NCBI GenBank assembly: GCA_004431415.1
Contig: QPMI01000039.1
Location: 434,001-498,000 of the forward strand
From: Cyanophora paradoxa CCMP329
Lineage: Eukaryota; Plantae; Glaucophyta
Length of the DNA stretch: 64,000 bases
Direction: 5' to 3'
Positions within the stretch are counted from its first letter, which is position 1, and every line of letters begins with the position of its first letter. Positions 3,203 through 63,650 of the stretch are shown one piece after another. The notes under the pieces were generated by a model. That model was not told the DNA's origin and ran no database searches. It worked only from the letters and a program-made list of their open reading frames with translations. The position numbers and the translations under genes were made by a program.

Positions 3203-3259
3203 AGTCGTCTTAGACTCGTCTACGGTACCGGACCCGTAAGACGAGTCTAAGACGACTTA
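3201..3259. repeat. Near-perfect inverted repeat / hairpin with about 25-bp arms
   Basis: taagtcgtcttagactcgtctacgg ... ccgtaagacgagtctaagacgactta. Confidence 0.8.
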
Positions 3260-4556
3260 CTTCGTCTACGTTAGTCGTAACTGTTAACAGTAGAACAATG
3301 AACTATACTGCAGTAGCCTGCCAGTAGGTCCGAGCCTCGAGGCTCTCTTGAAATTTCTTCAGAAAATCCCTGCTTTCCTCCTTTTTTTGCACATCACTAA
3401 AAAACTCACTCGCTGCCAACTTGTGCCAAGTACCACCGAGGCACTGCAGCGACGGACGGCGAGTCGGCGACGGTTGGTCACCGGGTCGACGTCGGGGGCC
3501 TGATTCTAATTACATATTATACGCAACTATATATATATATAGCTCGTACCGTAGTACCGGGTAGTACGGACTGGACTGTACGGTATGTCACTGAGAGTCA
3601 CGTGCACTGAGTGCCACTGACTCTGCCACGGAGTGCCACGTGCACAGTCTGCCAGTGTCGAGTCACTGTCGACTCACTGTCGAGTCACTTTCGACGTCTG
3701 CCACCGAGTGCCACGTGCACCGTGCACGCCGCGGCCGTGGCACAGTGCCACACTGTGATCATGAATCCGCGGCGCCGTGGGGAGTCCAACTTGGCAACTG
3801 TGACATGTACATACAATGATAATTTTAAACGCGTACGGTACGGTCGGTAGTACTCGGTACCATGACATACCAGTATCCAAGTACTGGTACTAGTACTAGT
3901 ACCGTACTACGGTATACGTACTAGCACAATAAGCACATCCACTGGGCCAATGTCATCCATATGTACATGTACTGTACACGGTGACAGGCCTAGGTGATGA
4001 ACCGTGATGTACTTAAGTGCAGTCGACGTCACTGATCATGAGTGATGACCGTGCATGCATATGCGCAGGCAGGACCGTCGGACTGTGCACTGTGACTGTG
4101 TGCAGTCGACGGAGACGTCGACTCGGCGACTCGACGCCACTGAGTCGCTGCAGCTGCATGCCACAGTTCGCTGCAGGCCACGATGTGCAGGCACAGTGCA
4201 GCAGGCTGCCAGCAGCTGCAGGCTGCAGCTGCATGCAGCCAACGTGATAATTAACTCTGCCGATCGAGGCTCGCGATCGGGCCGCTCAGCGACTCGACTC
4301 GGGCTCGCCGAGCGGCCCGATCACGACTCTCGGCGAGTCGCCATTTGCGCTCGCACGCGCAATATACGAATACGCATACGTACGCGCGCGTAAACGCCCC
4401 ACGGTCGTTCATCAGCTTACGTACTACTGTTCAACGGTTGGCACTGCCGCTGCAAGGCCTCCGATCCGGGCAGCTGCAGGATCCATCCTGCCGCAGTGCA
4501 GCTGCGAATTGCGAAATGCAGGCTTTCAGCCGCTGAGCTCCGCGCCGTCGATATCG

Positions 4557-8561: not shown

Positions 8562-10429
8562 CTGATTGCTCAACTTGGCAATTAAGAAAGCAGGCTAGCC
8601 TAGGCCTGTTAAGCAAACAGCTTGCTTGGCCATGTGGTCACCGGGTAAGAAAGGTTGTGAATCCGGCGCCACTTGGTCGAACGCTTCTTCCGAATTAATG
8701 GCTCCGACAGGCCTAGGGGAACCAACAAAGGGGGCGCCGACAGGGAAAGCAACAAAAGGGGGTGATATCGATATCCTTCTCAACGTACGCGTCCTGCCGC
8801 GCCACGTCGATGTGCTCGAGGGCGGAAGGCTGCAGCTGGGAGAGCTCGAGGGAAATTGCAGAGAACCAAGGGCCGCGGTACTGCAGCGGGAAGCCGTGGG
8901 CGAACCCGTGTAAGAGGCGGGCCCGGCGGGCGGCAATTGTAAGGGAGGAATCGGGATGGCTCTCCGGATCCATGGCCAGGCCTAGGGCTGTACATGTGAC
9001 GATGCGATCGGGCCGCACAGGTGTGGGGCCGGGGCCAGACCTGCAGACAGGCCTGAAATTCGAAGGAGCTCCTCGGCGTCGAAGTCAGGGACCTCAATGG
9101 AGAAAGGCGGCTTCGGCGGCGGGCCGGGGGCGCCCTGCCCCCGGCGAGGAGGCGTGGCCCGGCGTCCGGAAGGCCCGACGCACTAGTACTGGCATGGGGC
9201 AAGGTGGCAGTGGCATGGGGCTCATGCCATGATGATAGAGCCTCGAGAGCGGCATGCGCAGGCTGGACCCGCGAAACCAGCGCGGGAGGCGGCGCTGGCG
9301 GCGCCCGCCGCGGGGCCCGGCCGCGCGGGGCCGGCGGGGCGGGCGCGCGGAGAGGCGGCAGCGGCGCCTCCAGAAACGCGAAATTGAGGCGGCTCGGGCG
9401 CCGCGCTTGTTTGCAAAAACGCGTTTAATTTGGGTATGCAACACAAGTTGACTATAGCTACTTGAATCAAATTCGGAATTTGAAGTTTAAGACTGCGAAA
9501 TCGGTGACCTCAGTAAGTCTACTTTATATTTACAACCCATAAATATTGGTAAAGCTCCCTCGACTCACCCGGGCAAAGTGCGCTGCTTTGGCCATTAAAC
9601 CAAAGATGCAGAGATCCGATCCAAATCTGCAATTTGTGTTTCTGGCGCTGCGCATGCCGGCGCCTGTTAACACTCGCGATCGCCGCATTGCATTGTACAT
9701 GTGATATTCAATGTCATAATTGCAATGTCATGCGCTGGACCATGATCCCGCGAATCCGAACTTCAAATCCTCAGAGTCTTTGTTTTCCAATTTCTATACA
9801 TGCCGGGGCGCCTAGCTGCATGCCATGCTTACACGTGCACCGGTACCGTAGTACCGTGGCACGACTGTCTAAAGCTGTGCGCATTCTACACTATAGCTAG
9901 TACTCAGTGCGACACGAACGTAAACTTGCCATGGAATCGCTAGATCATAATCAAGCCGCGAAACCATAAATTAGCTTCAAATAAATCCATCGATGTCTAT
10001 CTATAACTCAGCTGCAAATAGATCCATCTATAGCACTAACGTTGCAATATAATGGTACAAGGAAATATTACGGTACAATAAGCTGGCCGTATATACGGAT
10101 ACGCGTGCTTCTATGCATTACGTTGATCGCAATTCATGATGCGCCCTCTATATATAGCTATATATGTACGTCGCGGCGTCCGGATTCGTAGCTTCGCCTG
10201 AAGATGTAAAGGCATGCGCATGATCAGTATTCGAATTCAACGATGCACGAAAAACTTAGATGTGAACGGCGGGCACCGGAGATGTGCATTGTAAGGCTCG
10301 CTTAAACGACTCGAGCGTTGCATTCCTCGGGGCACCTGCAACAATATAAATTTAAATTGTAAGTAATTGCAGCCGCGGCTCACACGGCTAGCGCTGGCGC
10401 TGGCATACGCGCATTTTATATCGACGATA

Positions 10430-11775: not shown

Positions 11776-12485
11776 TTAGAGAACTTCAGGCCGGAGCCTT
11801 GGAGTCTTGGACCCGCGCGCGCCGGCGCCGGCGCCGTGCAGCGTGCCGAGGCTCGCCGCGGCGCCACGGAATTTGTGACGGAACTTCGGAAACGTTGAGC
11901 TATCCGACGATCCGATGGTCGCTGCAGCTGGCGATCGCTGAGCCACGCCGGATGCAAATTCAACACGCACTGCACTGCGGCATGCACATGCGCGCGCTGC
12001 AGTCGAGCCGGGAAATCGGGACCAACGACCGTCGGTCGGCGTCCGACGGTCGGACCGTCGGAAGTCGAATTCGATGCTGATCGATGATATTCGATATGAG
12101 GCTGCTGCCTCAAGTCCTGCTGGCAGGCTGCTGCACTGCACTGCGGCATGCGCAGTCTGCAGGAGCATTTGCAGCGGCATATGCATGCATGCGCATACGG
12201 ACGATGATCCTCACTTTGGGGTACATGTACCGGTACATGCATGATTTAAAATCGTCTATAGCTACGCCGCGTAGTACGCGGCGGGGCCGGCGGGCCGGCG
12301 GCGGCGACTATAGCTAGCTACGCGGTAGTAAGCGCGCGTCGACGTACTACTAGCACAGTAATAGTAGTACTGTAGTATTACACTACTACTAGTAGAACAG
12401 TTTATTATACTACCGGTATTACAGTTTACTACCGGTAGTACTATGATACTCAGTGACTGTACTAGTCACTGAGTGCCAGTGTTAC

Positions 12486-12754
12486 TACCGTAATGCAGAA
12501 TATTAAGGTCTGCACTTTATTATGTCATCCCCAAATTATGTCGCCTCTCACGTGACTCGTGACGTGAGATAACGACATAATTTGGGACCGTCATAGCAGG
12601 GCACGCTCAGTAGTACCCCATGAAATTTACAGTCCCATATACAAGCCTGAAAATTGCATGCCGACATAATTTGGGGACGTCATATTTCGCATAGAGAAGG
12701 ATCCCGTTTTAAAACGACATAAATTTGACCGTCATATTATTGTGTTTTACGGTA
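12486..12754. mobile_element. MITE, TA|CCGTAA family (Tc2/pogo-like termini)
   Basis: taccgtaa...ttacggta ends and internal cgacataattt repeats. Homologous to 56688-56941 (reverse orientation) and 58086-58333. Confidence 0.85.
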
Positions 12755-21530: not shown

Positions 21531-22928
21531 CCCTCTAGTTCAGAGAATCCTCCGGATCCAGATCCTGTGCCTCCTGCCCAGCGCCCCCGCCTCCAGTCTC
21601 CGGATCCGGCACCCCCAGTGCTTGCTCCAGCTCCTGCAGCTGCGGCTACATATGCCGAGCCCCGTCAGCCTGTTCCGACTTTGCGACGGATTCGCTCCCC
21701 TGCACCCTCACCGTCGCCACCTGCTCAGCGGCTCCGTACTTCCCTGCCCCCCCCTAGTCCTTCTCTGATACCTTCCGTTTCACGAATCCGCCGCCCCCGG
21801 TCTCCGTCGAATTCAACCTTGCCTCCCGATGCCGATCCGTCCCCTGTCCATGTGTCTCGGCGCCTGCGGCTTTCCTCTCCTGTACCTTCGGCTTCCCCTC
21901 TGGCTGTCCCGCCAGATCCACCTCGCCCGCCGGTTCCTGCATGGCCCCCTTTGATTCATGATAGTCTTGTATCAATCTTCGCTTCACCTCAACTTAGTTT
22001 ACCCTCAGTTGTTTTGCCGTCACCTCCATCAGATGCTTCATCGATGTTAGTTAGGAGCACTGGCCCCCTCCACCTTCCAGTTCCTCGTGTATTCCATGCC
22101 TTCCCTGTACCTTTGATTCCGTTCCCTTTGTCGTTAGCTCTGCCTCTTCCTCCTCCATCTCTCACTGTTAGCCCTCAGGCAGTTCCGCCTCTTTATCTTC
22201 AGCGACCGTCAGACCGTATAGTTTTTGGCAGCGAGTATTTTGTGTATGGTGACGTTCCTCGTGTGTACCCTTCTCTCTCTTCTACTTCGCTATATTTGCC
22301 TCTCCCGCCTGGTTCAGCCCCATCGTCTGCCTTCCCTGTCACTACTGGCTTGCGTTTCGCCCCTCCTCTTATACTGCCGATTCCGAGTCTGCACCCGAGC
22401 TCTGCCCCTTTCCTCGTGTCGTCCCCAGTTCCTCAGATTAGTCTTCAGCCGTCCATTGTTTTACCAACTCTACAATCTCGATTCCGTTTAGACACTCCGC
22501 CAGCTTCGACTTTCCCCTCTAGTGGTGTCCTACGTTTCGCCTCTCCTACTGTTCTACCGCCTTTGCCTCCTGCGACTACGTCTTCTAGTTCTGCTGTTAG
22601 CTCTGTCTTGTCGTCTTCGTCTAGATCTTCGTCTTCGACTGTAGTTCCTCGTGCTCGTTCTCCTTATTTGCTGCGTCCCCGTGCTCCTCGTCGTTCTAGT
22701 GTGACTAGTACTTCTGCATCGACGCCCTTGAGCTCTTCTACTCCTTCTCCTCGTGCTCGTTCTCCTTATCTTTTGCGTTCTTCTGATCGTGTCCCTTCTC
22801 GTGATCCCTCTTGATTCTGTATATATTTTGTGCTAGTTTACTGTATCTTTGATTTGTGATTGCTTTGTTGTCTTTAATATCACTACCTACGGGGGGTTCG
22901 CCCCACCGTAGTCTCTCAAAAAAAAAAA
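21531..22928 (+). mobile_element. 5'-truncated poly(A) retroelement (LINE-like 3' part) carrying a Pro/Ser-rich ORF that ends at 22814
   Basis: A 3' stem-loop (ctacgggggg-ttcg-ccccaccgtag) is followed by an A-tail. Flanking direct repeat tgcccagatc at 21521-21530 and 22929-22938. Second copy at 59340-59689. No RT domain visible. Confidence 0.7.
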
Positions 22929-23294
22929 TGCCCAGATCTAGAAGCCGAATTTTCGAGCTTCTGCTGAAGTGGGCCAGAACTTCCCAGAAGCTCGAACTCG
23001 GAAGTTAAAGGCCCAGAAGTTGGGGGCCAGAACGTACCGATCACAAGATTCACGACGTACTAGGAGTCGAGGTCCCGCGGGCCGCGGCCGAGGACACTGT
23101 AGTGACTAGTACTGTACACGCAAGTTACCCGTCTAGTACTTTCTTGGTACCAATCGTGTGGTCGGTACCGCGTGGCGGATCGCGGCCTCTTTGGAGGTTG
23201 TCTCAGGAGGCTCCGACTCGCCTCCGAGCCCTGACAACTCCTACGTATACGTATACGTATACCCTAAGAGGCTAAGACCCCGACCCCGACCATA

Positions 23295-24494: not shown

Positions 24495-24747
24495 TACTGT
24501 AAACGTAGAAATTTTCGTCGAGACTTAATTTCGACAAAACCCGAAAATCGTGACGAAAATATGATTCGACAACATCATATTTTCGTCAGCCCCGCGAATC
24601 CTCCATTGACGTGTCAGCCGTTAGTACCCTTCCCCATACAAAATTTCAGTTCAAGAGTATCAAATATTCGTCAAAGCGCATGCAGGTCTGACGAATATTA
24701 ATATAGACGAAATAAAGACGCTGTCGAAGATTCCTACGTTTACAGTA
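24495..24747. mobile_element. MITE, TA|CTGTAAACGTA family
   Basis: tactgtaaacgtag ... ctacgtttacagta; same termini as 2978-3202. Confidence 0.85.
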
Positions 24748-25270
24748 TGATCACTGTACAGTGTACATGTATACTAGTATACGTACAATGTACTACGGTA
24801 CATGTGGCACTAAGTACTAAGTAGTACCGTAGTACTGGCGGTCCAGTGGCGGAGTCTGGCGCCGGCGCGGCGCCGGCTCCGCCGCTCCGGCCGGCGCGCG
24901 GCGGCCCGGCGGGGCCGGCGCCGGCGCCGGCGCGCGGCAGCAGCTGTGCAGCTCTGAGCTGCAGCGGCGCTGCACGCAGTGCCACGCACTGCTGGCATAC
25001 GCGTACGTTAATACGTATACCGGGAATCGGTCCGGGATCGGAGCTGTCATCGTATACTGTAGCTGTCGTCAGAAGTTCTCATCAGAGGCAGCCGCTGAGC
25101 ACTGTAGATATAGATCTAGTTCTTCGCTGCTGCACTGCGGCAGTGCAAGGCTTGATTAGCTGTAGTAGCTTTCGAATTCATCGGCCGCGCGCGGCGTCGG
25201 GCTTCGGGACCGCAGACGGGCTGACCTTGGCTGCAAAGGAATTTCGCACGAAGCGGCGGCAGCAGTCTAG

Positions 25271-26598: not shown

Positions 26599-28150
26599 GC
26601 GGCCATGGCCGGCGCTGGCCCCATTTTTCTGCCTTCGCGTACATTCGACTATAATTATCCCGGTGCACCACATTTCGTGCATTTCGTGAACACCATAATA
26701 ATTATAACTGTACTGCTTTGTTAGAGTAGGTCTAGATCTATGCCTAGGTTTCATTCAGCTGCAGCCCATGGCCAGTGCAATCGATCCCGGCCAGCTATGC
26801 ATATGATACTCGCCAAATTAGCGTATACTGAGCGTCCTTTGCGATCGGTGCACCGGTACCTGAGCGTCCCTCTCGAGCTCGCGCACATCATATATATCGA
26901 TATTTGTATTGCGATCTTTCTAAGAATAGGTTTAGGCCTCGCGATCGCCAGCCAGCCACAGTTTCAGAGTTTTTGATACTTGCCGACAAAGGCAACAGTT
27001 TCTTCGGTAGGTCAAAATACCTGATACCTCTTAACGTATACGTAGACTCGCCTCGCTCGTGCTTGCATACCCCAAAATGGTGTACAGTTTAATCGGGTTG
27101 GTCGTTTTGCTTGTCAGTGTGATTCGAATTCAATGCATACTATGATATGAAATGAAATGCTTCGAATTCCCTGAGGCTCTCCGATTCCGAGGGGCGCCGC
27201 GGCGCATGCGCAGGGGGACGATCTCATGCCATGATGCTGCCGGCGCCTACCACATAAATAATTACAAGTTAGCTATATAGTAAGATCTAGACTCAGTTTC
27301 GCAGCGCACTCGAGCTCCTGCGCATGCACTGCAGCTGGCTGTCGCGAATGATCCTATGATCGATATCCGGTCTGACGGTCGCGCCCATCATGATCACGAC
27401 GTCGACGTCGACGGTCCGACTCGGCGATGCCGTGGTGGTCCGCCGGTACCGGTCTTAGCTTGTGCATACGACTAGACGACTGTTGACGACGCCACAGCTG
27501 CAGCTGCAGTCTGCAGTGATCATGACTCTGCACCACTGGCCATGGGCAACTGCCATCATGCCATCGATATCGCGATCGGGTCAAGCTTGCAATTGGAATC
27601 TTAAGCTTAAGTCGACGTCGAGTCGCTGTAATCATTGAATCGAATATATATAGCTATATATAGCTATATAGGTGTGTAGCTATTGAAATGTACTACGGTA
27701 CATGCCATGATGCACGCGCGCGTCTATTCGTCTAGCCCGCGCCTGCGCCTGCATGGGAGCCGCCGTAGCCGATCGCGCGTGAGGCGACAGGGAGGCTTCC
27801 TGGCCCTCCCCGGGCCCCCTGGGCGAATTGGGCAGCTGATTATAAGATGCTGTGAGGCTCATGATCAACGGATTTGGACATGGAACTCGAAACTACCACT
27901 GAAACGCGGGGTACGTATACGTAGCCCGGCAGCGCCCCGCTGGGCCACTGCACGCGCGGATACCTACTAGTAAGGGGCGGCGGCCACCCCGAGAATTGAA
28001 CTGAAACGTTCTAAGAGCCTGCATCCACGACATCCAAATAGCCGCGAGGGCTGCTCAGCGGCTTGAAATCACGCAAAAAGAGCTACAAACCCGTCCTACA
28101 TAAACCCTTGCCCGGCAAACAAAACTGCGACGCGGCCATTACGCGTCTGC

Positions 28151-31100
28151 CTACGCGGCCGGCTTGCTGCCCTTGGCGCCGGAGGTGGGGCCGGCGCCGG
28201 CGGCGCCCGGCGCCCGCTCGGGCCGCTCGCCCTTGCGCGCCTCCGGCCGCTCCCGCCCCGTCTCGATCTCGATCTCATCGACGTCCAGGGCGGGAAGCGG
28301 CGTCTTCCAGTAGGACCTGCCGCGGGTTCGGCTCCGCGCGGGCCCCCAAATTCGAATTCGAATTCGTGCGGACCACTCGTTGAAGTTCTCGTCCTCCTCC
28401 GCGACGGCCCGCTTGAGGGGGGGGAACATCTCGTTGTAGAGGCGGTTCAGCGACGCGTACCTGGGTACGCGTTGACTCGAAGAGGCGAGGAAAAAAGGAC
28501 CGGAGCCGGGAGTGGCGCACGTCGCGAGGTAGGTCTTGTTGTAGGATCGAATCTCCCCCGAGGCGTTGATGATGAAGATCTTGCCCTCCGGCACTCCCAC
28601 CGCCCGGTACGAGACGACGTCCTGTGGCCCCGCCGCGCGATTCAGGCGAGGAAGAGGGGGAAGAGGCGCGGGGAAGGGCGGGGATGGCGGGGCGGGCCGT
28701 GGGGCGGTTCCCAAAGCCGGCGTAAAAAGGGTTGTGGTCCTCCGGGAACAACGACCGGATGTCCCGCAGCGCAGCAATCTTGAACTCCTGCGGCGAAAAT
28801 GTAATGTACGCTTGCAGACCCGGGGGGGGGGGAGATCGGGTGGGGGTACCTCGGGCTTGCGGCGGATGACCTCGCGGGTGAGGCTCTCGAAGAGGCGGTC
28901 CGGGGACATGATGACGGGCCCGGGGGGTAGGGCCAGCCCGCCCTGCTTCAGGCCCTGCAGGTACCCCCGCGTCGTGTTCGCCTGCCCGATCGCCCGTGAC
29001 GTGAGGTACATCATGTTGTACCCGTTCTCCATGATGTTCCTGCGCCCCCGCCGCGGTCGGGCGCGCGCCGGGGCGCGGGCGTGTACCCGTCCGCGGGGGC
29101 GCACGTGTAGAGGGCGGTGACGCCGGAGTGGGACCAGTCCTTGCCGACGATGGGGAGAATGTGCCCCAGCACGTCGGAGCGCGTGATGGTCCCGTCCACG
29201 TCGGAGACGATGACCTTGGTGCGCCAGGGCCACACGTACATCGTCGACTCGACCCGCTGCGTCCCCTGCAGCTTGCTCGCCACCGAGAACACGATCGTGT
29301 TCGTCCCGTACCGCAGCTCCAGCGCCTTCAGCTGCCCCGGCGACGGCCGCAGGCTCTTCCGCTGGTACGTCGCCCGCTCCGCCCGCGCCCCCGCCGCCGC
29401 CTTGGCCGGCTCCGCCGCCGCCGCCGGCGCCTGGGGGATCTCCTCCGGGCCGTCCTCCTCCTCGTCGTCCCCGTCCCCGTCCTCGCCGGCCGCCGCGGCC
29501 GGGGCGGCGCCGCGGCGCGGGGCGCGCGGCGAGGCCGGAGTGGAGGAGGGCGGCTCGACGCGGTCCGAGCGCGGCGAGAGCGCCGCGTCCGCCGCCGCGG
29601 CCGCCGCCGCCGCGTGCGGGGCGGCGCCCCGCCCCGGCCCCACCACCAGCGCCACGAGCGGCCGGAGGAGGCGGCCGGCTTGGCCTCGGCGGCGGCGGCG
29701 GCGGCGGCGGGCGGGGGCGCGGGGGCGCGGGGCTGCGGGCAGAGGCGCTGGAGCATCTCCTGCGGCGGCTGCCGCCCGAACGCCATCCAGTACATAACCA
29801 GCGGGGAGGCGACGCTCCAGGGGAAGAGCCTGGGGTCGTTGAGATGAGGCCGACGAGAACGGAGGCAAGGCGGGGGCCGCACCGGTCGCCGATGCGGCAG
29901 AGGAGGCGGGGGTCCGAGGCGAGGCCCGGGTCCTCAGCCAGGCGCTCCGCCTCCACCCGGCTCGCCTCGAACGTCCCCTCGAACTCCTGAGGATGAGGAT
30001 GAGGGGGGGGCAGGGCAGGGGGGTGGAGGGGCGGGGCGGACGGGGAGGAGGGAGAGGGCGGTGCCGGCGTGGGCCCCGGGGGGCAGCAGGTGGGCGCAGA
30101 GCGAGAGGGTCAGGCCGTCCTCGAAGGGCAAGGCCGGGGCGCCGGCGGGGCCCGCCCGGGGCCCGCGGCAGCGGCGACTCGAGGGCCGCGAGCGGCGGCG
30201 TCACGGCCGCCGTCCCCTGCGGGGCCGCCGCGGCGGCGAGCGGCGGCGTGACCGGCTCCTTGTCGGCCGGGTCGCGCGGGGCGGGGTTGTAGGCGGAGGA
30301 GGAGGAGGAGGAGGAGATCGAGGGGGCCGGCGAGCGGGCCGAGGGCGACGCCGGCGGGGAGGAGGAGCGCGAGGCGCGGCGGGGTACGGCCGTCGTGAAG
30401 GCGGTGGCGGGGGACGGGCCGGGGAGGGGCGAGAGGCGCGGGAGGGAGGGCGCGTCGGGGGCGGGGGCGGGGGCCGGCGGCTGCTCGGGGGAGGCGGGGG
30501 GCGAGGATGAGCCGGAGGACGAGGAGGAGGAGGAGAAGGCGGGGAGGGCGGCGCCAAGGCTGCCGGAGACGGGCGGGCGGGCCGGGGAGGGGGCGTTGGA
30601 GGCGGGGCGGAGCGGGACGGGGCGTAGCAGCTCGGGTGCAGCGGGGGCGGGGGCGGCCGGGGAGGCGTAGGCGTCCGACTCGGAGGCGCTGCGGCGGCTG
30701 GCGGAGGTCCGCGGCTTCATCTCGATGCGGAACTGCAGCTCGTCCTCCTCCTCCTCGCCCTCCCCGTCCCCCTCCGTCTCCTCCCCGGCAGCGGCGGCGG
30801 CCGGCGGCGGGGCGGGCGGGGCGGGGAGGGGGCCCTGCGGGGGCGACATGGAGGCGAGGAGGCCGTCCGGCTCCTCGTCCCCGTCCGGGATCCGAGGCGA
30901 CCCCTCCTCGACCAGGGGCGCCAGGGCCGCCTCCCCGCCGGCCCCCTCCGCCTCCGCCTCCGCGGGGGCCGCCCCGCCGGCCCGCCCCCGGCCCGGCCTC
31001 GGCCTGCTGCGCGGCGCCGTCCGCGGGGCCGGGCCCGGGCCGGGCCCCGGGTCCACGCGCTTGACGGGGAGGCCGCCCCATCGCCAGGTCCACCAGGTCC

Positions 31101-32566: not shown

Positions 32567-35500
32567 ATGCTGCGAGCAGCCGCCGCCGCGCGGCGGGTGC
32601 GTCTCTCCGCCTCCTCCGTTATTTAGGAGCGTCTTAGAGTGCCGCCGCGCGGCTGCGGGCGTCGCGTCCCGTCCGCGCGTGCCGCCCCGAGCGCGGTTCC
32701 TGAGCCGGCCGCCGCAGGGACTGGGCCTGGGAATCGGTCGCCGTGCGTACGCGACGAACTATGGCAAGGGCGTGCTCGCCAGTGCGAAGCCGGACACGGG
32801 GCCGAGCCAAGTCCGTCCCCGCATCTCGGCCGCGCGTCCGGCGGCGGGCCGCCGTTGACGCTTGCGCAGGGACAGTTCTCTCGCGCCTACCCGGTGACGG
32901 ACCACACGTACGACGCCATCGTCGTCGGCGCCGGCGGTGCCGGCCTCCGCGCTGCCATCGGTCTCGCGGAGAATGGCTTCAACGCCGCTTGCATTTCAAA
33001 GGTGTATCCTACGCGCTCGCACACTGTGGCTGCTCAGGTGGGCGCGGCGCCCCGCTTGCCAATCTCGTCATCGCGTGAACAAGCGCAGGGCGGCATCAAC
33101 GCGGCCCTCGGCAACATGACGGAGGATGACTGGCGCTGGCACATGTACGACACGGTCAAGGGCAGCGACTGGCTCGGTCCGCAACGCACGCCGCGCTCCG
33201 CCGGGCCGCCGGACGCCCGCTGACGCCACCACCGCAGGCGACCAGGACGCTATCCATTACATGTGCAAGGAGGCCCCGAACACTGTGATTGAGCTCGAGC
33301 ACTACGGCGTTCCTTTTTCGCGTACGGACGACGGCCGCATCTACCAGCGCGCGTTCGGCGGCCAGTCGCTCAAGTTCGGCAAGGGTCCGCCGCCGGCGTC
33401 GCCGCGCCGCCTGCCGCTCTTGCGGGCAGCTAATGCGCACGGAATGCGCGCGGCAGGCGGCCAGGCGTACCGCTGCGCGGCGGCCGCGGACCGCACGGGG
33501 CACGCGATCCTGCACACTATGTTCGGGCAGGCGCTGCGGCACAACGTCAACTTCTTTAACGAGTACTTCGCTCTGGATCTGATTACGGAGAACGGTGCGC
33601 CCCGCTCTTTCTTTTCCCGCGCCCCGCTTCCTTTTCCGACGCGCGTGCGGCGTGGCAGGCGCGTGCCGGGGCGTCATGGCGCTGTGCCTGGAGGACGGCA
33701 CCCTCCACCGCTTCCGCGCGCACTACACGATCCTCGCGACCGGCGTGCGCGCGCGCCCCGCGCCGGCCGGCCGCCCGTCGCGCCGCCGACGCGGGCGCGG
33801 CGCAGGGGTACGGACGCGCATACTTCTCGGCGACATCGGCGCACACGTGCACGGGCGACGGCAACGGCATGGTGGCGCGCGCTGGCCTGCCTCTCGAGGT
33901 CCGCCATTCGATCCGCGCGCGATGCAATTTGATCGCTGGTTTGATTCGATCCGCGCTGGGCAGGACCTGGAGTTCGTGCAGTTCCACCCGACCGGCATCT
34001 ACGGGGCGGGCTGCCTTATCACCGAGGGCTGCCGCGGCGAGGGCGGCTACCTCAAGAACGCCAACGGCGAGCGCTTCATGGAGGTGGGCGTACCCCCCTT
34101 CCTCTTCCCCTCCTCCGGAGCGGCCGCCCACGCCCGTCCCGCGCCCGTCCGCAGCGGTACGCCCCGACGGCGAAGGACCTCGCGTCGCGTGACGTCGTCT
34201 CGCGCGCCATGACCATCGAGATCCGCGAGGGCCGCGGCGTCGGTACCCCACCCCCCTCCAGCCGAGCCGCGCGGGGGGAAGTCTTAGGGTCGTGTTTCCC
34301 CCGCAGGCCCCCTGAAGGACCACATCTACCTGCACCTGAACCACCTGCCCCCGGAGGTCCTCAAGGAGCGCCTGCCCGGTACCCCCCTTTCCCTCCTCTC
34401 CCCCCCTCTCTTCCCCTCTCTAACTCCCATCAGGCATCTCCGAGACCGCCGCCATCTTCGCCGGCGTTGACGTCACGAAGGTGCGCCCCGCGCTCCAAAC
34501 GGCCTGCAGCCCGCGCCAGCCAGCTAGCCGGCTCGCCGTCCCCCTGGGGTACGCCCCTCGAGCTCGCTCGCCGCGCGCAGGAGCCGATCCCGGTGCTGCC
34601 GACCGTGCACTACAACATGGGCGGCATCCCGACCCTCTACACCGGCGAGGTCGTCACCAAGAAGGCGCGCGAGCCTCGCCTCTTCCGCCCCGCCAGCCGG
34701 CCGGCCTGACTGCCGGCCCGCTGCGCGACAGGACGGCAACCCGGACTACATCGTGCCGGGGCTCATGGCCGCGGGAGAGGCCGCCTGCGCCTCCGGTGCG
34801 CCCCTGCGCCCGCGCCCGCGCCTGCGCCTGCGCCCCCTCACCCTCTGGCAGTGCACGGGGCGAACCGCCTGGGGGCCAACTCGCTGCTGGACATTGTCGT
34901 CTTCGGGCGCGCCTGCGCCCTCACCGTAGCCGAGCGCATCAAGCCCGGCGCGCCCCACAGGCACGCGCCCCCCGCCCCTTTTTTGAGTGCCCCGGGCCTC
35001 CGCGGTCGGTTCCGAGCCGCGCGCCAGGCCGCTGCCGCCGAACGCGGGGGAGGACGCGATCGCGAACCTGGACCGGATCCGCTACGCGAACGGGCCGCTC
35101 TCGACGGCCGAGGTCCGCCTCAACATGCAGCGCACCATGCAGGTGCCCCGCCGTCACCCGTCCGAGAGGGAGAGAGAGGAGGGGAGAGGTGGAGACCGGG
35201 GAATGCTGACTTGCGCCCCGCCCCGCCCCGCCCCGCCCCGCCCCGCCCCGCCCCGCGCAGGACCACGCGGCGGTCTTCCGGACGCAGGAGACCCTCGCCG
35301 AGGGTGCGCTGTACCTCCCCCCCCCTCCCCCCCTCCCCCACCCACCCAACGCGCCTCACGCTTCCCCGCAGGGTGCGTGAAGATCGACGAGGTGGCGCGG
35401 ACCTTCAAGGACGTCCGCACCACCGACCGCTCCCTCATCTGGTCCCCCCCGCCCCGGGGGCCCCTGGGAGCACCCCTCCTCCCCCGCCCTCCTCTGACCC

Positions 35501-46953: not shown

Positions 46954-49156
46954 TTAAATTATGCGGACAGTGTTGCCCTCGAGGCGGCAGCCCGTGCAGT
47001 CGGGCGCGACGTTTACTGCGTCCTCCAGCATGCTGCTCGAGACGGCGCCCTTGCCGCCGTCTCGCACAACGATCCCGAACTTCTGGTCATGGATCCTGCA
47101 GGAGACGGGCGGTTCACGACGGGGTCTGCGCCCTCTTCGATCACGATGTCTGAGAGCGCGTTGCCGTAGACGTCGTTCGCCTCCGCGACGCCCTTCGCCA
47201 AAGTGTGGAAGAGGATGCCCGCCTGGCCGCAGTCGTGCACCGTGTTCCCTGCGCAGCACGGAATCGGTCAAACGAAGGGGCCGGGGGCGGGGCGGGGCGC
47301 CCACCGCGCAGCGTCGGGGTCGTCCCCTCGTCGCGGGCTTCGATGCCGTTGAGGCCGGCGCTGGAGACGTCGCAGCCCTCCACGACCGCCCGGCTCCCGC
47401 CCGTGATCCACACCGCACAGCTCTTCGGCGCCGTGCACCGGATCGTGATGCCCTTGACGGTCGGCGCCGCGGGGCCCGTGCATTTCAGCGTAGAGCCCTG
47501 GTCCCACTTGAGGACGGCCTCCCGCGGCCCGACGATGTGCACGTCCTTGTCCAGCGTCACCTGCTCGTTGTACCTGGCCCCAGCAGCCAATACTCAAGCT
47601 ACGGACGGCAGGGAAACAAAAGCATTCAGAAGCGCACCGGCCGGGGGCGAGGAAGATTGTCTGGCCAGGCTTGGCAGCCCGCACGGCATCCATGATCATG
47701 GTCGACGTCCCCGCTTTCGCGTATATGTCGAAGTTTCCAAGCAAAGCGGCCTGCGAGCGAACATAGGCATATTTGAGCAGCATTGAAGCGGAGGATGCCG
47801 AGAAGAAGACGCGTCAGAATTTAAGCAACATTAAGCATCATTTATTTTAAGATTTGAATTTGACGCGCCTTCTTCTCGGCGTCCTCCGCCCGCTTCCGCT
47901 GCGCCGCCGCCTCGCGCTCTGCAGCCTCGAGGCGAGTCTGATCACAAAAAATCAAGGCCTGTATCATCAGCGCACGCCGTCTCGTCGTAGTGGAGAATTC
48001 AGGCGCACGGCGAAGACGCTACGCTCTGTCTCCATTGCCCGTTCCGAAGTGGTTGCGCGCTCCGATGCAGCCGAAGCCTGCGAAATCTAACTTCTGCATG
48101 CGCAGAAATCCGATACGAAACAGTGCAGAAATCCGATACGAACCTTGGCTTCGGCGTCCTGGGACCGGCGCTGCTGCATGGCTGCCTCTGCCCCCGCAGC
48201 AGCCAGACGCCCCTGCGCGAAATTTAACGCGAAATTCAAGTTTGGTGAGATCCGTTCGTGATCCAATGACCATATACAGCAATATCGATCCGATGCATTA
48301 CGTAATATGACTAATTTGAGTTCGATCATGCAAAGCACTGAAGTGCACGCACCGCGAGGTCGCGACGCTCGGCATCCGCGATGGCGGCCTGGTCCTCGGC
48401 CGCAGCTGCACGCTCAGAGGCAGATGTGGCCTGCATTTAATTTGCGCATTTCGGAATCAGCTCGCCGAGTCGAGAAAAGCGGAAGGCGTAAATCTATACT
48501 AGTGCATAGTATTCGCACCGACTTCGCCGCCTCCTCTGCGGATTTCTCGGCCTGCGCGGTCGGTTTCAGTTTTCCGAAGCGGCGATAAGGCTCGAAAATA
48601 TCAAACTCGAATTTTCTTCCATGGCGTGGCACATGCACATAACGCGAGCGATTGCGCGGGTTTCGCAGCTCTAGCCAGAATCGCACCGCCTTGGCCTTTT
48701 CCTCGGCGGCGGTGACGAGCTCAGAAGTCATCGCGGCCCGCGCGGCGGCCTGATACACGTAAGAGCGACATCGATCGACATCGAAAATCGCACCGCCATC
48801 ACGTCCTGCGCGACGGCCCCAACGCTCTTGCACTGCAGGGTAAGCGCAGCACGCGCGATAGCGTCGAACAAGAACCGAAATCAGCGGACCGCATTGATCG
48901 CGGCAAGGATCGCATCGATATCGCGATCGGTGTCCTGGAGAACTCGAGTTGAGGCCTGCGAAAATGGCTCAACGCGCGCACAAACTCCGCGGCGCGAAAT
49001 TTGAAATCGCGACAAGCACCTGACGTGCGGGACTAGAGCCCTCCGGATCCGCTGTACCTGCGCGCGCAAGTCGTCGTCGTCGCTCGCGATCGCAAGCTTA
49101 ATTTTATAAGCTGAGAATACACTCACCGACGCTGAAGGCCAGGCGCTTCTCGACAT
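46954..49156 (-). pseudogene. Coiled-coil + right-handed beta-helix (PbH1, FBXO11-like repeats) paralog 1, probably damaged
   Basis: NTVHDCGQAGILF...NDVYGN repeats. It lacks one repeat unit and the last splice donor (about 47115) that its paralogs have. Start approximate. Confidence 0.6.
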
Positions 49157-49750
49157 CGGAAAGCTGATCACGAACGAGAACCATTTTCGAGGCGCCCGGC
49201 GGCCCCGCGAAATCTTTAATTTCGAAACGAAGGAAATGAGAGGCGATCGAAGGATAGATAAAGAAAAAGAATCCTCAGAGTTCACAAGGAAAATGGAGGG
49301 AAATACAAGAGCAGAGAGAAAATGGAGGGAAATACAATGGAGTTCACAAGTTCAGAGTAAGAGCAGAGAAAATACAAGGGGGCCAGAAATAGCAGAGGAA
49401 ATACAAGGGGGCCAGATATAAGACGAGAGGGGAAGAGGGAATTCAAATTTGAAAGGGAGACTCTGAGCTCGAGAGCAAGGGGCCATGCTGAGCTCGAGAG
49501 CAAGGGGCTCGAGATATATATATATATAGGCGACCAAAATGGGCAAGCTGAAGGCGGACTTCGGAAGGGCCCGGGGGGCAGGGCCGAGAGGCCCCGGAAT
49601 ATCGGCAGTGCACGAGATTGCAATTGCAAAATTGCGAGCGTCAGCTACATGCTATAGCTACATGCACGGGATTGCAACATGCTACATGCGCGATCGACCG
49701 AAGTCGGCGTCCGAAAAGGGCCGGGCTCGTTCTCTGTATCTAAATTCAAT

Positions 49751-52146
49751 CTAGCGGACGGTGTTGCCCTCGAGGCGGCAGCCGGCGCAGTCGGGCGCCA
49801 CGTCGATCGCCTTCTCCTCCCCGCAGCCGTGGCGCTCCAGAACGTTCCCCGCGATGGTCCCCTCGCCGCCGTCTCGCACGAGGACGCCCCACTGCTGGTC
49901 GTGGATCCTGGGCAAAGTCGGGCGAGAAGGAGGGAGGGAGGAGGAGAAGGGGGAGGAGCTCGAATCGAAGGCGCACCGGTTGCCCTTGACGGCGGGGTCT
50001 GCACCCAGCTCGATGTGCACGCCCACCTCGGCGTTGCCGTACACGTCGTTGGCCTCGACCGTGCCCCGCCCGCTCTCAAGCACGTGGATGCCGGCCGCCT
50101 TGCCGTCGTGGACCTTGTTGCCCCGCACGACGGGGTCCGCGCCGGTCTGGATCGCGATGCCCGCGCTCCCGTTGCCGTAGACGTCGTTCGCCTCCGCGAC
50201 GCCCTTCGATGACTCGTGGAAGAGAATACCCGCCTGGCCGCAGTCGTGCACCCAATTATCTGGGCAGTGCAGAATCGGTCAAAACATTAAACGTTAACGG
50301 AAGGCCGCGGGCAGATCTAGAGGGCCGGGGGCGCCCACCGCGCAGCGTCGGGGCCGTCCCCTCGTCGCGCACTTCGATGCCGTTGAGGCCGGAGCTGGAG
50401 ACGTCGCAGCCCTCCACGACCGCCCGGCTCCCCCCTGAGATCCACACTGCACAGCTGTTCGGCGCCGTGCACCGGATCGCGATGCCCTTGACGCTGGGCG
50501 CTGCGGGACCCTTGCAGCGAAGCGTGGTGCCCTTCGAGCACTCGAGGACGGCCTCCCGCGGCCCGACGATGTGCACGTCCTTGTCCAGGGTCACCTGCTC
50601 GTCGAACCTGGCCCGCGCAGCCGGCCCGCGGCCGACAATTGCAATTAGTCAAGAAGCTTAGGTTGAAAATATTCGATAGACGTCAACAGCGGTTGAATGT
50701 TTCGAAGCTTGTGGGTGCGCATGCGCACCGGCCGGCGCCGAGAAGGATAATTTGGCCGGGCTTGGCGGATCTCACGGCATGCATTATTGTGGTCCCCGCT
50801 GCAGGTTTGACATAAATGTCGAAGTTTCCAAACAAAGCGGCCTGCAATGCGAGCCGCGGCATATTCGAGTTCAGAGCAAAAATCAAGTACGCCATAAGCT
50901 TCCGACGCGCCTTCTTGTCTGCCTCGTCCGCGCGCTTCCGCTGCGCCGCCATCTCTTGCTCCGCAGCCTCGAGACGGCCCTGATATCGAGCGTGAGAAGG
51001 TATATATATATTCCTTAGTACGCAAGATCTAGACGCGGAATCGCCATGAAGCGGGTAAGTATTTAATTCAGGCTGAATTCAGAACTCACAGCGAGGGCAC
51101 GACGCTCAGCTTCCGTGAGGGCGGCTTGGTGCTCCGCGGTGGCGGCGCGCTCGGAGGCAGCGGCAGCCTGCCGTAGAAAATTCGAACTTGACGCATAAAC
51201 TGAAATATTAAAGAGAGAGGGCGGCGGTCGTCGAACCGCACCGCCTTTGCCGCCTCCTCGGCTGATTCCTCGGCCTGCAAGGCTGGTTATATCGGAGCTA
51301 AAGTGCGAAAATTGTCCCAACTATAAATATATACGATTCAAAATCGCAGCCTCTCAGCCTCTCACCGCCTCCGCCTTTTCCATGGCGGCGACGAGCTTCC
51401 TTTGCGCCGTCGCTTCGCGCTCCGCGGCTTCGAGGCGCTCCTGTGCATGTTTGAATAACTTCAAGTATTTCGGTTTTTTATATAGCCCAGCCCATGGTCT
51501 GATATGAGAGTGGCACCGCCTTGGCTTTTTCCTCGCGATCGGTGGCGATCATGAGCTCTGAAGCTACCGCGTCCTTCACAGCGGTCCGCACGCCCTGACA
51601 CGAGCGAAATAGAAATTGCCCGAATTTCACGAGCGCGGTAGCTATAGATCTAGACCACATGCATCAATATCCGCACCGCCAGCTCCGAAGTCATGGCGTC
51701 CCGCGCAGCGGCCCGCACGCTCTAACCCAGATCATTAGCGGCGAAAAACAAGCGCAAATCGCAGATCATTAGCGGCGAAAAACAAGCGCAAATCGGCCGA
51801 CCTCGCTGATAGTAGCAAGGAATGCGTCGGAATCGTCTGGAAAAGGCGAGCTCGAGGCCTACAAGAAACGTTTTCGAAATGGACCGGATCAGCGCGCGAA
51901 AAGTAAACAGAGGTGCGGCGTGCGGCGCAGCAGCAGGCCTATATCTAGGCGCACCTGGTGCGCAGCTTCCGCTCCGCGATCGATCTCTGCAGCTGGCTCT
52001 GCGGCTGCGTATGTAATTTAATGTTTGCGCGGGTCGACGTCGGAATCAATTTACAGCGCGCGCGTCATCGATATCGATCATGATCAGAGTCGCGAACCGG
52101 GCGAATCATGATCCGCGTCGCGTGCGCGCACGATCTTGAGCACCAT
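49751..52146 (-). CDS. Coiled-coil + right-handed beta-helix (PbH1) protein, paralog 2
   Basis: GNKVHDGKAAGIHVLESGRGTVEANDVYGN repeats, VTLDKDVHIVG, and upstream EAAE-rich exons. Start approximate. Confidence 0.7.
51728..51795. repeat. Perfect 34-bp tandem duplication
   Basis: cagatcattagcggcgaaaaacaagcgcaaatcg x2. Confidence 0.9.
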
Positions 52147-56367: not shown

Positions 56368-56687
56368 GCTATAATACATCGCTGCCGCAGGACTGCGCGG
56401 CGCCGGAAGCTAGTTAGCCCGGCGGCCTGGATCCGGCCCGGGATTACTGCAAGTTAAAACTAGGCTGCAACTACGACTCGTAGTTCTACTACCGGTAGGC
56501 TAGGCTAAAGGTTCTAGCTACTAGTGTCACAGTGTAACGGTAGACGTCGGTAGTATAACCGCCGCCGCCGACGCGTGACGGGGACGGTCGTGCCGGCGGT
56601 GCCGCAGTCTAGATCTGCCGCAGTGCCGCTGTCTGCGGCACTGCGGGCCTGTACAGGCTGTACCGTAGTACTTGTTTACGACTCTAC

Positions 56688-56941
56688 TACCGTAATCCAG
56701 GAAAATATGACGGTCAAATTTATGTCGTTTGAAATCCGGACCCTTCTCTATGAGAAATATGACGCCCCCAAATTATGTCGGCATGAAATTTTCGGGCTTG
56801 TATGGGGCGGTAAATTGGGGGGGTAGCACTAAACACGCCCTACTATGTCGTCCTCAAATTATGTCGTCATGTCAAGTTTTCGGCGACATAATTTGGGGAT
56901 GACATAATAAAATGCAGACCTTAATATTCTGGATTACGGTA
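56688..56941. mobile_element. MITE, TA|CCGTAA family
   Basis: Perfect taccgtaatccag / ctggattacggta ends; reverse homologue of 12486-12754. Confidence 0.9.
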
Positions 56942-57234
56942 GTACGCCTGGCACAGTGGCGCGGGCACTGCGGCAGAGACTGCCGCAGAGTACAAGTCTC
57001 AGAGTCTGCGGCCGGGCAGCTGCAGGCTGCAGCCTGCAGGCTGCAGCGGCAGTGCTGCGGAGCCTGCGGCACTAATTTAACTCAGTAAGTGACTGCGGCA
57101 CTTTGACTGCGGCAGACGCCGGCAGTCACTGAGTGCCGCAGTGAGTGCAGCTTAAGTTAAGCTTGCACTGTTGGCAGTCTGTTGCACAGCCTTGCAGGCA
57201 ATTGCAAAAGTTGCAGCCAAGCTGAGCCAACTAG

Positions 57235-57483
57235 TACCGTAGAGCAGGAAAATAGTGGGCAGGAAAATAGTGGGCCGGAAATTGGGGGAAAGTGGCTTGT
57301 CAGCTAGCTAGATCATCAGCCTAGATGGGGCGGTAAATTTAGGGGGTACTGTATGGGGCAGCTTACTAAGTTAGCAGCAGGGAAATACTGGAGCCCGAAA
57401 TTAGTGGACTGAGTCAAATTTTCGGTCCACTAATTTCGGGCTCCACTAATTTTCTGCGTCCAGTATTTTCCTGCTCTACGGTA
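57235..57483. mobile_element. MITE, TA|CCGTAGAGCAGG family
   Basis: Perfect 20-bp inverted ends taccgtagagcaggaaaata / tattttcctgctctacggta. Confidence 0.9.
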
Positions 57484-58085
57484 ATGGCAAGTTCAAGGTT
57501 GCAGGCAGCAGGCTGCAGCTGCCGCACAGCCTCGGCACAGGCCCGCATGCAGTGGCGGCAGTGCCCCGCAGTGAGTCCAGTGACACAGTACACTGACTCA
57601 GTCTCGGTCCTCTCGGAGTCTCGGACTCCGGGACTCCCGGCCCGAGTCCCGGGACTCCGGGAGTGCCGCAGTGCAGCGCTAGCCTGTGCAGGGCCACTGC
57701 AGGCTCTGCCGCAGTGCTGCATGTGCACTGTGCACTGTGCAGTGTGCACTGTGCAGGCCCTGAGGCTGACAGTCACTGAGTGGCAGTGAGTGCAGCTCGC
57801 GCGGCGTGGAGTCGTGGTCCGACGGTCGCGCCGCGCCGCGCCGCGCGCGGCGGCCGCGGCCCGGCGCCGGATCGAACCGGCCGTTACCGGCGGCGCCGGG
57901 GCCGGCGCCGGCGGGCGGGCGTGCCGCGTGGCGCCGGCGGCGCGTGCCACGCCGCAGCCACGGCCCCGGGCGGGCCGCTGCCACTGCCTGCCAGTGCCTG
58001 GCAGTGTGCCTGCCAGGCCCGCTGGCCATGCCATGATGGCCGGCGTTGGCCGCCCGCTGCATTATGCATCAGCGTGCATAAAAAA

Positions 58086-58333
58086 CAGAATATTAAGGTC
58101 TGCACTTTATTACGTCGATCGTCCCCAAATTATGTCGCCGAAAACTTGACATGACGACATAATTTGGGGACGACATAGTAGGGCGTGTTTAGTGCTACCC
58201 CCCAAATTTACCGCCCCATACAAGCCCGAAAATTTCGTGCCGACATAATTTGGGGATGTCATATTTCGCATAGAGAAGGGTCGGTTTTTATAACGACATA
58301 AATTTGACCGTCATATTATTGTGTTTTACGGTA
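58086..58333. mobile_element. MITE, TA|CCGTAA family, left TIR lost
   Basis: Collinear with 12495-12754; ends gtgttttacggta. Confidence 0.85.
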
Positions 58334-59008: not shown

Positions 59009-59339
59009 CCCGGAGTCCGCGCACGCGGGCCGGGGCCCCATCATCATGGCATCATGGCATGCAGCCATGATGCAGGCGGCGGTAACGTACGAACTTCGAA
59101 TTCGGAATTTTTGCCAGCGTTTATACTAGTAATTTCGACAATGTAATGTACTAGTATACGTATATATAGCAATTCGCCGACTCGGCGAATTAATATTAAA
59201 CCTTTGTTTCGAATGAGGGGTACAGTACCAGGCCCGTCTATGGCGAAGTTAAAATTGTTAAATTGACTCGCGGCGCGGCGTCTCGAGCTCGCGCCGCGCG
59301 CGAGTCGCGCGCCGGCGCCATCATGATCATGTCAATTCG

Positions 59340-59689
59340 CTGCGTCCCCGTGCTAGCTATATAGCGCTCCTCGTCGTTCTAGCTGCATATAGTGTGACTA
59401 GTACTTCTGCGTCGACGTCGAGTACGTCCTTGAGCTCTTCTAGCTCCTTTATATTAGCTTCTCCTCGTACTCGTTCTCCTTATCTTTTGCGTTCTTCTAG
59501 ATCTGATCGTGTCCCTTCTAGATCTCGTGATCCCTCTTGATTCTGTATTTTGTGCTACCGTAGTACTTTACTGTATCTTTGATTTGTGATTGCTTTGTTG
59601 TCCTTAATATCACTACCTACGGGGGGCCCGGGTTCGCCCCACCGTATACGTATCAGTATATCATAGTATACGTAGTCTCTCAAAAAAAA
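59340..59689 (+). mobile_element. Short 5'-truncated copy of the poly(A) retroelement, riddled with palindromic micro-insertions
   Basis: Collinear with 22671-22928, including the A-tail. Confidence 0.9.
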
Positions 59690-60399
59690 CATATATAGCT
59701 ATAGTCGATCTGTATAATGTAACTTATAATGTAAGTTTAAGAGTCAATTAAAGACTGTAATTATATAACTCGTTCCATACAATCTACCGTAGTACCCCCC
59801 AACATCCGCCCCTTACAAGCCCAAATTGTTTAGTCTGTTAATTTGGGACTCTGTTATTTCGCCTAAGATTTTATACCCTGTTAATTAACGTTAACGGGCT
59901 GTTAAAATACGTGCGCTTGACGCGGCACTGACGCCGTGACGGCGGCTCTCACGACTCTCGACTCTCGAGCCCTTGAACCAAGCGACGAGCGCTCTCTCGA
60001 GCCCTTGAAGCAAGAACTCGAGCTGGGTTTTTTCGCCTTCAAGTTCGGTTCAACAGTGTGTTACAGTGAATGTTTTTAACTTGTACAATTGTATACGTAC
60101 GCCACGGTACGCGTAGCGGTAATGAAAAACCTCTGTTTTCTAATTGGCCAACATTGGCAGTCTCTCAAAAGCCTGGCGCTAGCTATATAGCGGGGAGGGG
60201 GGGGGGAGGAGGAGGAGGGGGGCGGGCGAAGTTTAAGCCCCCCCTCCGGGGATCCCCCCCCTGCTTGATAGCGCCCACGTGCACGCACGTGCACTGCGGT
60301 GCGAGCGCCGCGAGCTTGAGGGCCGGACATGTACAGGGCTAGCGGAGCCTCGGATCCGGAGGGCCTTCCAGGCCAAATGCAAATGGCAGCTTCGAGGCT

Positions 60400-62250: not shown

Positions 62251-63650
62251 TCACTCATGAAAAACAAAACCGGCAGTTGCGTCCATACCGTCGACGATAT
62301 ACGTATTGCCGTCGAGATGGCAGCACGTGCAGTCGGGGCCGACGTCGATCGCGTCCTTCAGGCGGGGGCCGAGCCGCTCCAGCGCGTTCCCCGTCACAGC
62401 GCCCTTGCCGCCGTTGCTGACGAAGATGCCCCACTGCTGGTCGTGGATCCTGCGCAGAGGCAGCCGTACACGTCCACGTGAGATGGCCGCGGGGTGGGGT
62501 TAGAGGGCGATCATGAGGGAGACATAGAAGAGTACAATTGCAAGCTTAAGCTGAAGGGCGTACCGGTTGTCCAACACGACGGGGTCCGCCCCGGTCTTGA
62601 TCTCGATGCCCGAGCGCGCGTTGCCGTAGATGTCGTTTCCCAAGAACGTGCCCCGCCCCTTCTCCCGCACGAGGATGCCGCAGGCCTCGCCGTCGTGGAC
62701 CTTGTTGCCCCGCACGAACGGGGCCGCGCAGGTCTGGATCGCGAAGCCGCCGAACCCGTTGCCGTAGACGTCGTTGCACTCCGCGACGCCCTTCGCCGAT
62801 TCATGGAAGAGGATGCCGGCCTGGCCGCAGTCGTGCACCGTGTTCCCTGCGCACGCGGAATCGGTCAAACAGAGGGCCGGGCGCGGGGTTGGGGCGCCCA
62901 CCGCGCAGCGTCGGGGCCGTTCCCTCGTCGCGAACTTCGATGCCGCTCAGTCCCGCACCGAACACGTTGCAGCCCTCCACGACCGCCCGGCTCCCGCCCG
63001 CGATCCACACCGCAGAATTCTTCGTAGCTGCGTTTCGGATCGTGATGCCCTTGACGCTGGGCGCTGCGGGATCCTCGCAAAGTAGCGTGACGCCTTGGTC
63101 CCACTCCAGCACCGCCTCCCGCGGCCCGACGATGCTCACATCCTTGTCCAGAACCACCTGCTCGTAGTACCTGGCGCCCGCGGACGACAATATTAATTTC
63201 GCCAAAACGGCGACCGCCAGCAAACGCCATAGCTATAGCATTCAAATGTACATATACACGTGCACCGGCCGGGGCTGAGGAGGATAGTCTGCCCGGGCTT
63301 GGCGAATCGCACGGCATCCATAATCGAAGATCCGGGGCCAACATTAATCTCAAATGTGGCGTCCTGCGATCCAGTCATCGTTGTCACGTGCACGGAAAAT
63401 TAAATTGAATATCTCGATATTGATTGCACTTGACGCGCCGTAATTTCTACATCCTCAACGGGTCGCGGCCTCCACTGCATCGCAGCCTTTCGCTCAGGAT
63501 CCGTAATCTCAATTGCAAGGATCCCCTGCTTCAAAGGCGTCGCATTCTCTGCGTCCTCATTCCGCTTGCGCTGAACGGCTGCCTCTCGCTCCGCAGTCTG
63601 GAGGCGATCCTGAAGAGAAGAGCAGTGAGCAATACGAAGTACGTATACCG
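62251..63650 (-). CDS. Right-handed beta-helix (PbH1) protein, paralog 3; 5' end uncertain or outside the window
   Basis: GNTVHDCGQAGILFHE...GNKVHDGEACGILVREKGRGTFLGNDIYGN; same intron positions as the paralogs. Confidence 0.7.

Follow-up and report, generated by a model that had tools for sequence, protein, structure and literature searches.

How did one copy of a repeated sequence in Cyanophora paradoxa (copy B) come to carry the heptamer TACCGTA at 59556-59562, where the other copy (copy A) has a simple TA? The preliminary description of this DNA, a stretch of 64,000 nucleotides that we call the window, took the heptamer for a mariner-type excision footprint. Its strings and coordinates are correct (TGCTAGT in A, with the TA at 22834; TGCTACCGTAGT in B), but it put the difference between the copies at 5 bases, and when A (22665-22935) and B (59335-59700) are aligned with affine gaps, B exceeds A here by 8. 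At the site, the alignment opens a 5-base gap and then a 3-base gap three bases downstream, which is equivalent to a single 8-base gap plus a G/C mismatch; either way, the net difference is +8 and not the +5 of TA-NNN-TA. In context, GTGC-TAG-TTTAC in A (TAG at 22834-22836) faces GTGC-TACCGTAGTAC-TTTAC in B. The sequence between the flanks in B is the 11-mer TAC-C-GTA-G-TAC (59556-59566), and the heptamer is its first 7 bases.

We hold with high confidence that the heptamer at 59556 belongs to a general class of the form X-C-revcomp(X)-G-X, in which a stereotyped insertion of 8 bases rewrites any triplet X (the +8 motif); a sister form with a 6-base insertion, X-revcomp(X)-X (the +6 motif), is commoner. 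As null model we simulated order-3 Markov sequence block by block (2 kb each), a conservative choice in that the scars' own tetranucleotides are retained. Against it, the window holds 105 +8 motifs where 10.5 are expected (maximum 18) and 487 +6 motifs where 91 are expected, while the mirror design X-G-revcomp(X)-C-X occurs 19 times (10.8 expected). The +8 design is confined to 3-base X, with no case for 4-base X (1.4 expected); the +6 form is found 40, 13, 7, and 3 times with X of 4, 5, 6, and 7 bases, versus 9.8, 1.3, 0.25, and 0 expected. As for the inner letters, the pair (C,G) alone is enriched and 14 other pairs are near expectation. Half forms, with the C only or the G only, reach just ~1.5 times expectation, and hence the C and the G arrive together; a class with two inner bases, CA..TG, was looked for in the window and is not enriched. 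The 105 cases span 44 different triplets, most without TA, and A or T is present in 86 cases; TAC/GTA contributes 9, exactly the nine 11-mers in the table. Site 59556 is an ordinary member of a striking, stereotyped scar class in non-coding DNA, and it had been read in the wrong register.

When both designs are stripped out iteratively, 3472 bases disappear (428 +6 and 113 +8 events), compared with ~570 in simulations, and the two motifs cover 11.1% of the DNA with local GC below 0.65, compared with 1.1% in simulations. Scars number 2-3.5 per kb in low-GC DNA versus 0.5 in high-GC DNA, which is mostly coding and in which they are 4-6 times rarer per kb. The ORFs at 28151-29956 (minus strand) and 33126-33932 (plus strand) encode LNS2 (lipin) and FAD_binding_2 domains and represent ordinary host genes of these high-GC blocks. 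The window also holds three paralogous gene segments with 75-82% identity (46954-47754, 49745-50845, and 62287-63325), among which one ORF matches the Pfam families Beta_helix and NosD. The C. paradoxa genome paper reports 29.4% repeats, with unknown repeats at 11.5% of the genome, and makes no mention of MITEs, footprints, or palindromes (PMC6704402); the full-text literature on palindromic sequence in the species yielded nothing relevant. Since both are silent, the +6/+8 design seems to be undescribed.

The repeat pair itself fits the design in part. Over ~265 aligned bases, A and B differ by 5 substitutions and ~12 indels, of which 10-11 are extra bases in B. Perfect +6 events, two on TCT and one on GGG, account for three of the B-specific indels, and an ACT-AGT-ACT scar is common to both copies. 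The strict grammar fits only 3 of the 10 A/B indel clusters, the others being complex, and a path from A to B built solely from +6 and +8 steps, even with +3, +4, and +5 variants allowed, explains the same number and does not reach site 59556 without a substitution. There, copy A has TAG where the +8 design predicts TAC, so that a clean reading requires one G/C substitution in one lineage. No third copy was found in the 64-kb window, and no metagenome contig matches a 33-base stretch of the repeat exactly; hence these two copies do not tell whether B gained the bases or A lost them between 3-base direct repeats. The 28-base extra segment of B at 59643-59670 has GTATACGTA on both sides of a 13-base core, with a +8 scar nested inside, and the grammar reduces only part of it. 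Both copies finish with CTCTC and an A-run of 8-11 bases (22913-22929 in A, 59680-59690 in B), which suggests a retroposed 3' end, either a SINE/LINE tail or a processed transcript.

Table. Features of the window discussed in the text, with positions counted from its first base
Feature	Position	Strand	Remarks
Repeat copy A	22666..22929	+	A-run at end
Repeat copy B	59335..59696	+	A-run at end; ~11 short extra segments relative to A
Matching site in copy A	22834..22836	+	single triplet TAG
+8 11-mer, X = TAC	59556..59566	+	X-C-revcomp(X)-G-X
+8 11-mer, X = TAC	3547..3557	+	
+8 11-mer, X = TAC	3904..3914	+	plus strand reads GTA-C-TAC-G-GTA
+8 11-mer, X = TAC	9844..9854	+	
+8 11-mer, X = TAC	24790..24800	+	as GTA-C-TAC-G-GTA; nested in a TGT-ACA-TGT scar
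+8 11-mer, X = TAC	24825..24835	+	
+8 11-mer, X = TAC	27690..27700	+	as GTA-C-TAC-G-GTA
+8 11-mer, X = TAC	56661..56671	+	17 bases ahead of MITE M2
+8 11-mer, X = TAC	59785..59795	+	downstream of copy B
+6 scar TCT-AGA-TCT	59496..59504	+	clean, B-specific; copy A has a single TCT
+6 scar TCT-AGA-TCT	59517..59525	+	clean, B-specific
+6 scar GGG-CCC-GGG	59624..59632	+	clean, B-specific
+8 scar TAT-C-ATA-G-TAT	59659..59669	+	B-specific, within the 28-base B-only segment
MITE M1	12486..12754	+	TA on both sides; ends CCGTAA...TTACGG; heptamers belong to the element ends and are not footprints
MITE M2	56688..56941	-	M1 family, opposite orientation; site TAC-TA-GTA
MITE M3	57235..57483	+	TA-flanked; 33-base terminal inverted repeats starting CCGTAG
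MITE M4	58085..58333	+	M1 family; right end intact at TA, left end lost or diverged
MITE C1	2978..3202	+	TA-flanked; ends CTGTAAACG; supplies two TACTGTA/TACAGTA heptamers
MITE C2	24495..24747	-	C1 family, opposite orientation; supplies two more TACTGTA/TACAGTA heptamers
TACTAGTA (TA-C-TA-G-TA)	2209, 12387, 21100, 24772, 27965, 59124, 59149; also 3888, 3894, 21091		

What, then, writes such a motif? The heptamer at 59556 is probably a +8 triplet scar of hairpin-mediated excision, neither a Tc1/mariner product nor tied to the CCG-ended MITEs. For the class as a whole, we lean slightly toward the excision, by way of hairpins formed on the flanks, of a cut-and-paste element that duplicates 3 bp of its target and has 5'-C...G-3' ends. 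An element of this sort would insert at a triplet X to give X-[C...G]-X. On its departure, each strand would be nicked one base inside the element, and that base would attack the opposite strand at the junction of element and flank, so that the left flank would be sealed as the hairpin X-C-revcomp(X) and the right flank as revcomp(X)-G-X, with the element's last base at the tip. The hairpins would then be nicked open and the revcomp(X)/X overhangs would anneal, since those of the two sides, having one triplet as their common source, would be complementary. Every join in a consistent register would give X-C-revcomp(X)-G-X, wherever the nicks happened to fall, and a path in which the base was not retained would give X-revcomp(X)-X. 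The hairpin path would explain why the unit is strictly 3 bases, why C and G come as a pair, why half forms are scarce, and why the outcome is uniform. Against it, when the window was scanned for elements that have C...G termini, inverted ends, and direct 3-bp flanks, the matches stayed at noise level, neither a filled site nor a transposase was found in the window, and 20 of its ORFs compared with Pfam include no transposase of the Tc1/mariner/pogo or any other type. Moreover, the scar density would demand a very large number of excisions, and this we count against an excision origin. With no CA..TG scar class, nothing ties the scars to CACTA-type ends beyond the C and the G.

The strongest competitor dispenses with transposons. 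A host nuclease, or an error of repair or replication, might write X-revcomp(X)-X, with or without the C and the G, through 3-base staggered breaks or template-strand switching; the +6 and +8 designs would then be the output of an undescribed host process in which 3-base staggered breaks are sealed by hairpins and rejoined. The lack of a donor element in the window and the extreme scar density (about one per 50-70 bases in low-GC DNA) both speak for such a process, as does the small excess of the +6 form with X of 4-7 bases. However, template switching would hardly yield an invariant C and G, a +8 motif limited to 3-base X, and no half forms, all of which fit element ends and a fixed target duplication. 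We regard a host process as unlikely, although it deserves to be kept in mind.

The mariner footprint must be judged very improbable. In Tc1/mariner excision, both strands are cut and 2-4 terminal transposon bases are left between two TAs (PMC6943129, PMC5499845); the canonical Sleeping Beauty footprint, TA-CAG-TA/TA-CTG-TA, has exactly the 7-base form in question (PMC6943129). The excision of a CCG...CGG MITE with 3-base staggered cuts would leave TA-CCG-TA, and MITEs of this description are present in the window: the TA-flanked MITEs at 12486, 56688, and 57235 do begin with CCG, as first proposed, and the NNN of the heptamer equals the terminal 3 bases of resident TA-duplicating elements, M1-M4 having the structure TA-CCG...CGG-TA. 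In the M1/M2/M4 family, the sequences beyond the right end part immediately behind the TA in three independent flanks, and the TA target duplication with ends CCGTA... is thus sound. No clean private scars were found in copies M1, M2, and M4. M2 and its flanks lie within a 364-base structure (56614-56977) with 20-base inverted arms (TCTGCCGCAGTGCC...), and a 63-base hairpin with 31-base arms (3199-3261) abuts the right end of C1, with a leftover TACGGTA (3221) at its centre.

The heptamer counts also look favorable to a mariner footprint at first sight. TACCGTA/TACGGTA occurs 22 times in the window, where 3.1 (order-2) or 2.0 (order-3 Markov) are expected; it is the commonest TANNNTA, with an 11-fold enrichment, but ranks only fourth among over-represented 7-mers, in a list dominated by pieces of short palindromes. 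TACTGTA/TACAGTA is found 13 times (2.5-3.1 expected). Every heptamer position listed in the preliminary description exists, and the TA-NNN-TA count that it proposed, when run in the window, bears out the enrichment of CCG/CGG and CTG/CAG; but the free TACCGTA/TACGGTA copies are mostly 11-mers, not footprints. TA-flanked MITEs supply, with their ends, eight of the 22 (from M1, M2, M3, the right end of M4 at 58333, and a solo end at 14065), leaving 14 free, and nine of these read TACCGTAGTAC (3547, 3908, 9844, 24794, 24825, 27694, 56661, 59556, and 59785), with flanks that have no sequence in common. In the CCG orientation, GTAC comes after the heptamer in these nine and before it in none of the 14 (p = 0.004 for the split of 9 versus 0). 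The base rate of GTAC after TA in the window is 1.5%, which gives p ~8e-14 for 9 of 14, and only 1 of 12 MITE insertion-site flanks has GTAC. A symmetric footprint such as that of mariner requires nothing of its flanks and leaves the one-sided GTAC unexplained, which counts against it. A mariner footprint would also add a net 5 bases, carry no fixed, oriented sequence outside, and be confined to TA targets; none of this is found, the A/B difference being +8 and the same grammar extending to 44 triplets, most without TA. Once MITE ends and 11-mers are removed, 5 heptamers are left (3221, 3579, 3834, 3900, and 10069, the last resembling a MITE end, TACCGTAAT) versus 2-3 expected, which is no more than chance. 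Hence the link to CCG-ended MITEs looks coincidental, and TAC-C-GTA appears to read as TA-CCG-TA by accident. The mariner reading is accordingly rejected, and the idea of excision scars may survive in another form.

As for TACTGTA/TACAGTA, 4 copies are MITE ends and 2 represent one site common to A and B, giving ~8 independent sites where ~3 are expected; a T/A-centred analogue of the +8 design was considered as their source and rejected (4 versus 1.2 expected). Two further observations concern the 11-mers. An 18-mer, AATGTACTACGGTACATG, is present at two loci 2.9 kb apart with unrelated flanks (24787-24804 and 27685-27702); without its +8 scar it becomes AATGTACATG, and the pair could stem from a small duplication or from a common word that was scarred convergently. 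The interval 24825-27700, considered as an autonomous element bounded by two 11-mers, has no further end similarity and no Pfam match in its ORFs, and it was rejected.

The wider proposal, that the deserts record repeated insertion and excision, fares better. It holds in the sense that they contain many small stereotyped scars, possibly of transposon excision, but these are not mariner footprints. The supposed rows of footprints at 3825-3935 and 12330-12490 are stacks of triplet scars, built on TAC, GTA, ACT, AGT, TGT, and ACG; when these are removed, 26 of 111 and 16 of 161 bases are lost, respectively, and 34 of 96 are lost from 24745-24840. The hotspots had been thought self-amplifying, each footprint adding a TA target in a TA-poor genome. 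TA is not scarce in the window (1908, versus 1936 expected from base composition), and although +8 motifs number 113 after the removal of inner scars versus 105 before, the eight extra nested ones are about what a scar density near 10% predicts and do not demonstrate self-amplification. Among the words found repeatedly in the deserts (3590-3760, 12440-12480, and 56950-57130) are CACTGAGTGCC and CTGCGGCA.

Could the 11-mer instead be a fragment of a MITE end, or a functional binding site with a GTAC core, spread by element decay or by selection? The ends of M3 read TACCGTAG, its repeat starts with CCGTAG, and the free heptamer at 10069 looks like the MITE end TACCGTAAT. The match to the M3 ends stops after 8 bases, however, the nine 11-mers have unrelated flanks, and the motif is one case of a grammar that covers 44 triplets; we find this origin scarcely credible. 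Least credible of all is an assembly or sequencing artefact that makes tiny palindromic insertions, since the pattern is sequence-structured and depleted in high-GC coding DNA, ACT-AGT-ACT is present in both old repeat copies, and, to our knowledge, long-read errors do not take this form.

Another possibility is that the TA-flanked MITEs leave a scar of their own. The palindrome TACTAGTA, or TA-C-TA-G-TA, is the analogue of the +8 motif on a dinucleotide; it occurs 10 times in the window (1.4 expected), compared with 3 for its mirror TAGTACTA, and 7 of the 10 lie outside triplet scars, where 0.93 are expected. Of the 16 dinucleotides, TA alone has a comparable excess. The resident MITEs resemble Tc1/mariner elements in their duplication of TA, and their ends are C...G; small as these numbers are, such elements may excise by flank-hairpin chemistry, leaving TA-C-TA-G-TA rather than TACCGTA. 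M2, within 56685-56944, is inserted at TAC-TA-GTA, the centre of TACTAGTA; since this is a palindrome of the scar type, triplet scars may create TA targets for MITEs.

If the triplet motifs are excision scars, they constitute a uniform and countable record of transposon traffic, and a main source of insertions in the spacers, introns, and promoters of this glaucophyte, amounting to 11% of the window's low-GC DNA; the grammar would also reveal a transposase that cuts one base inside each end, with a 3-base target stagger. If they have another origin, they point to an undescribed mutational process that would have filled about a tenth of the non-coding DNA with palindromes. In either case, the lesson for annotation is that short palindromes and TA-NNN-TA words should here be parsed by the triplet grammar before a transposon family is inferred.

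Among known systems, Tc1/mariner elements such as Sleeping Beauty offer one likeness: a small insertion in non-coding DNA whose first seven bases are TA, 3 bases, and TA, the middle 3 equal to the ends of resident TA-flanked MITEs. The insertion described here differs in being +8 rather than +5, in having an oriented extra G-TAC, and in using any triplet rather than TA alone; its inner bases are the reverse complement of the site, and only one C and one G are transposon-like. CACTA/En-Spm (CMC) transposons make a 3-bp target duplication and have the ends CACTA...TAGTG. They resemble the inferred element in duplicating 3 bases at any triplet and in ends that start with C and finish with G; the difference is that the window yielded no such element, filled site, or transposase, and no class of scars that keep CA..TG. 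The footprints of plant Ac/Ds, Tam, and En/Spm elements are of the flank-hairpin type, with palindromic (P) nucleotides, and in Hermes the first nick is placed in the flank, at a distance of one base, rather than in the element. Hairpins on the flanks that leave footprints are a settled feature of hAT, Transib, MULE, and RAG, and Tc1/mariner lacks them (PMC5499845). The likeness to hAT, Transib, MULE, and RAG, which can be read directly from the sequence, is that the target duplication is kept and an inverted stretch of flank lies between its two copies, the product to be expected of flank hairpins once opened. Where the scars of C. paradoxa depart from flank-hairpin systems is in their uniform rather than variable outcome, in the 3-base unit with one terminal base kept on each side, and in a density, 11% of low-GC DNA, far above that of reported cases.
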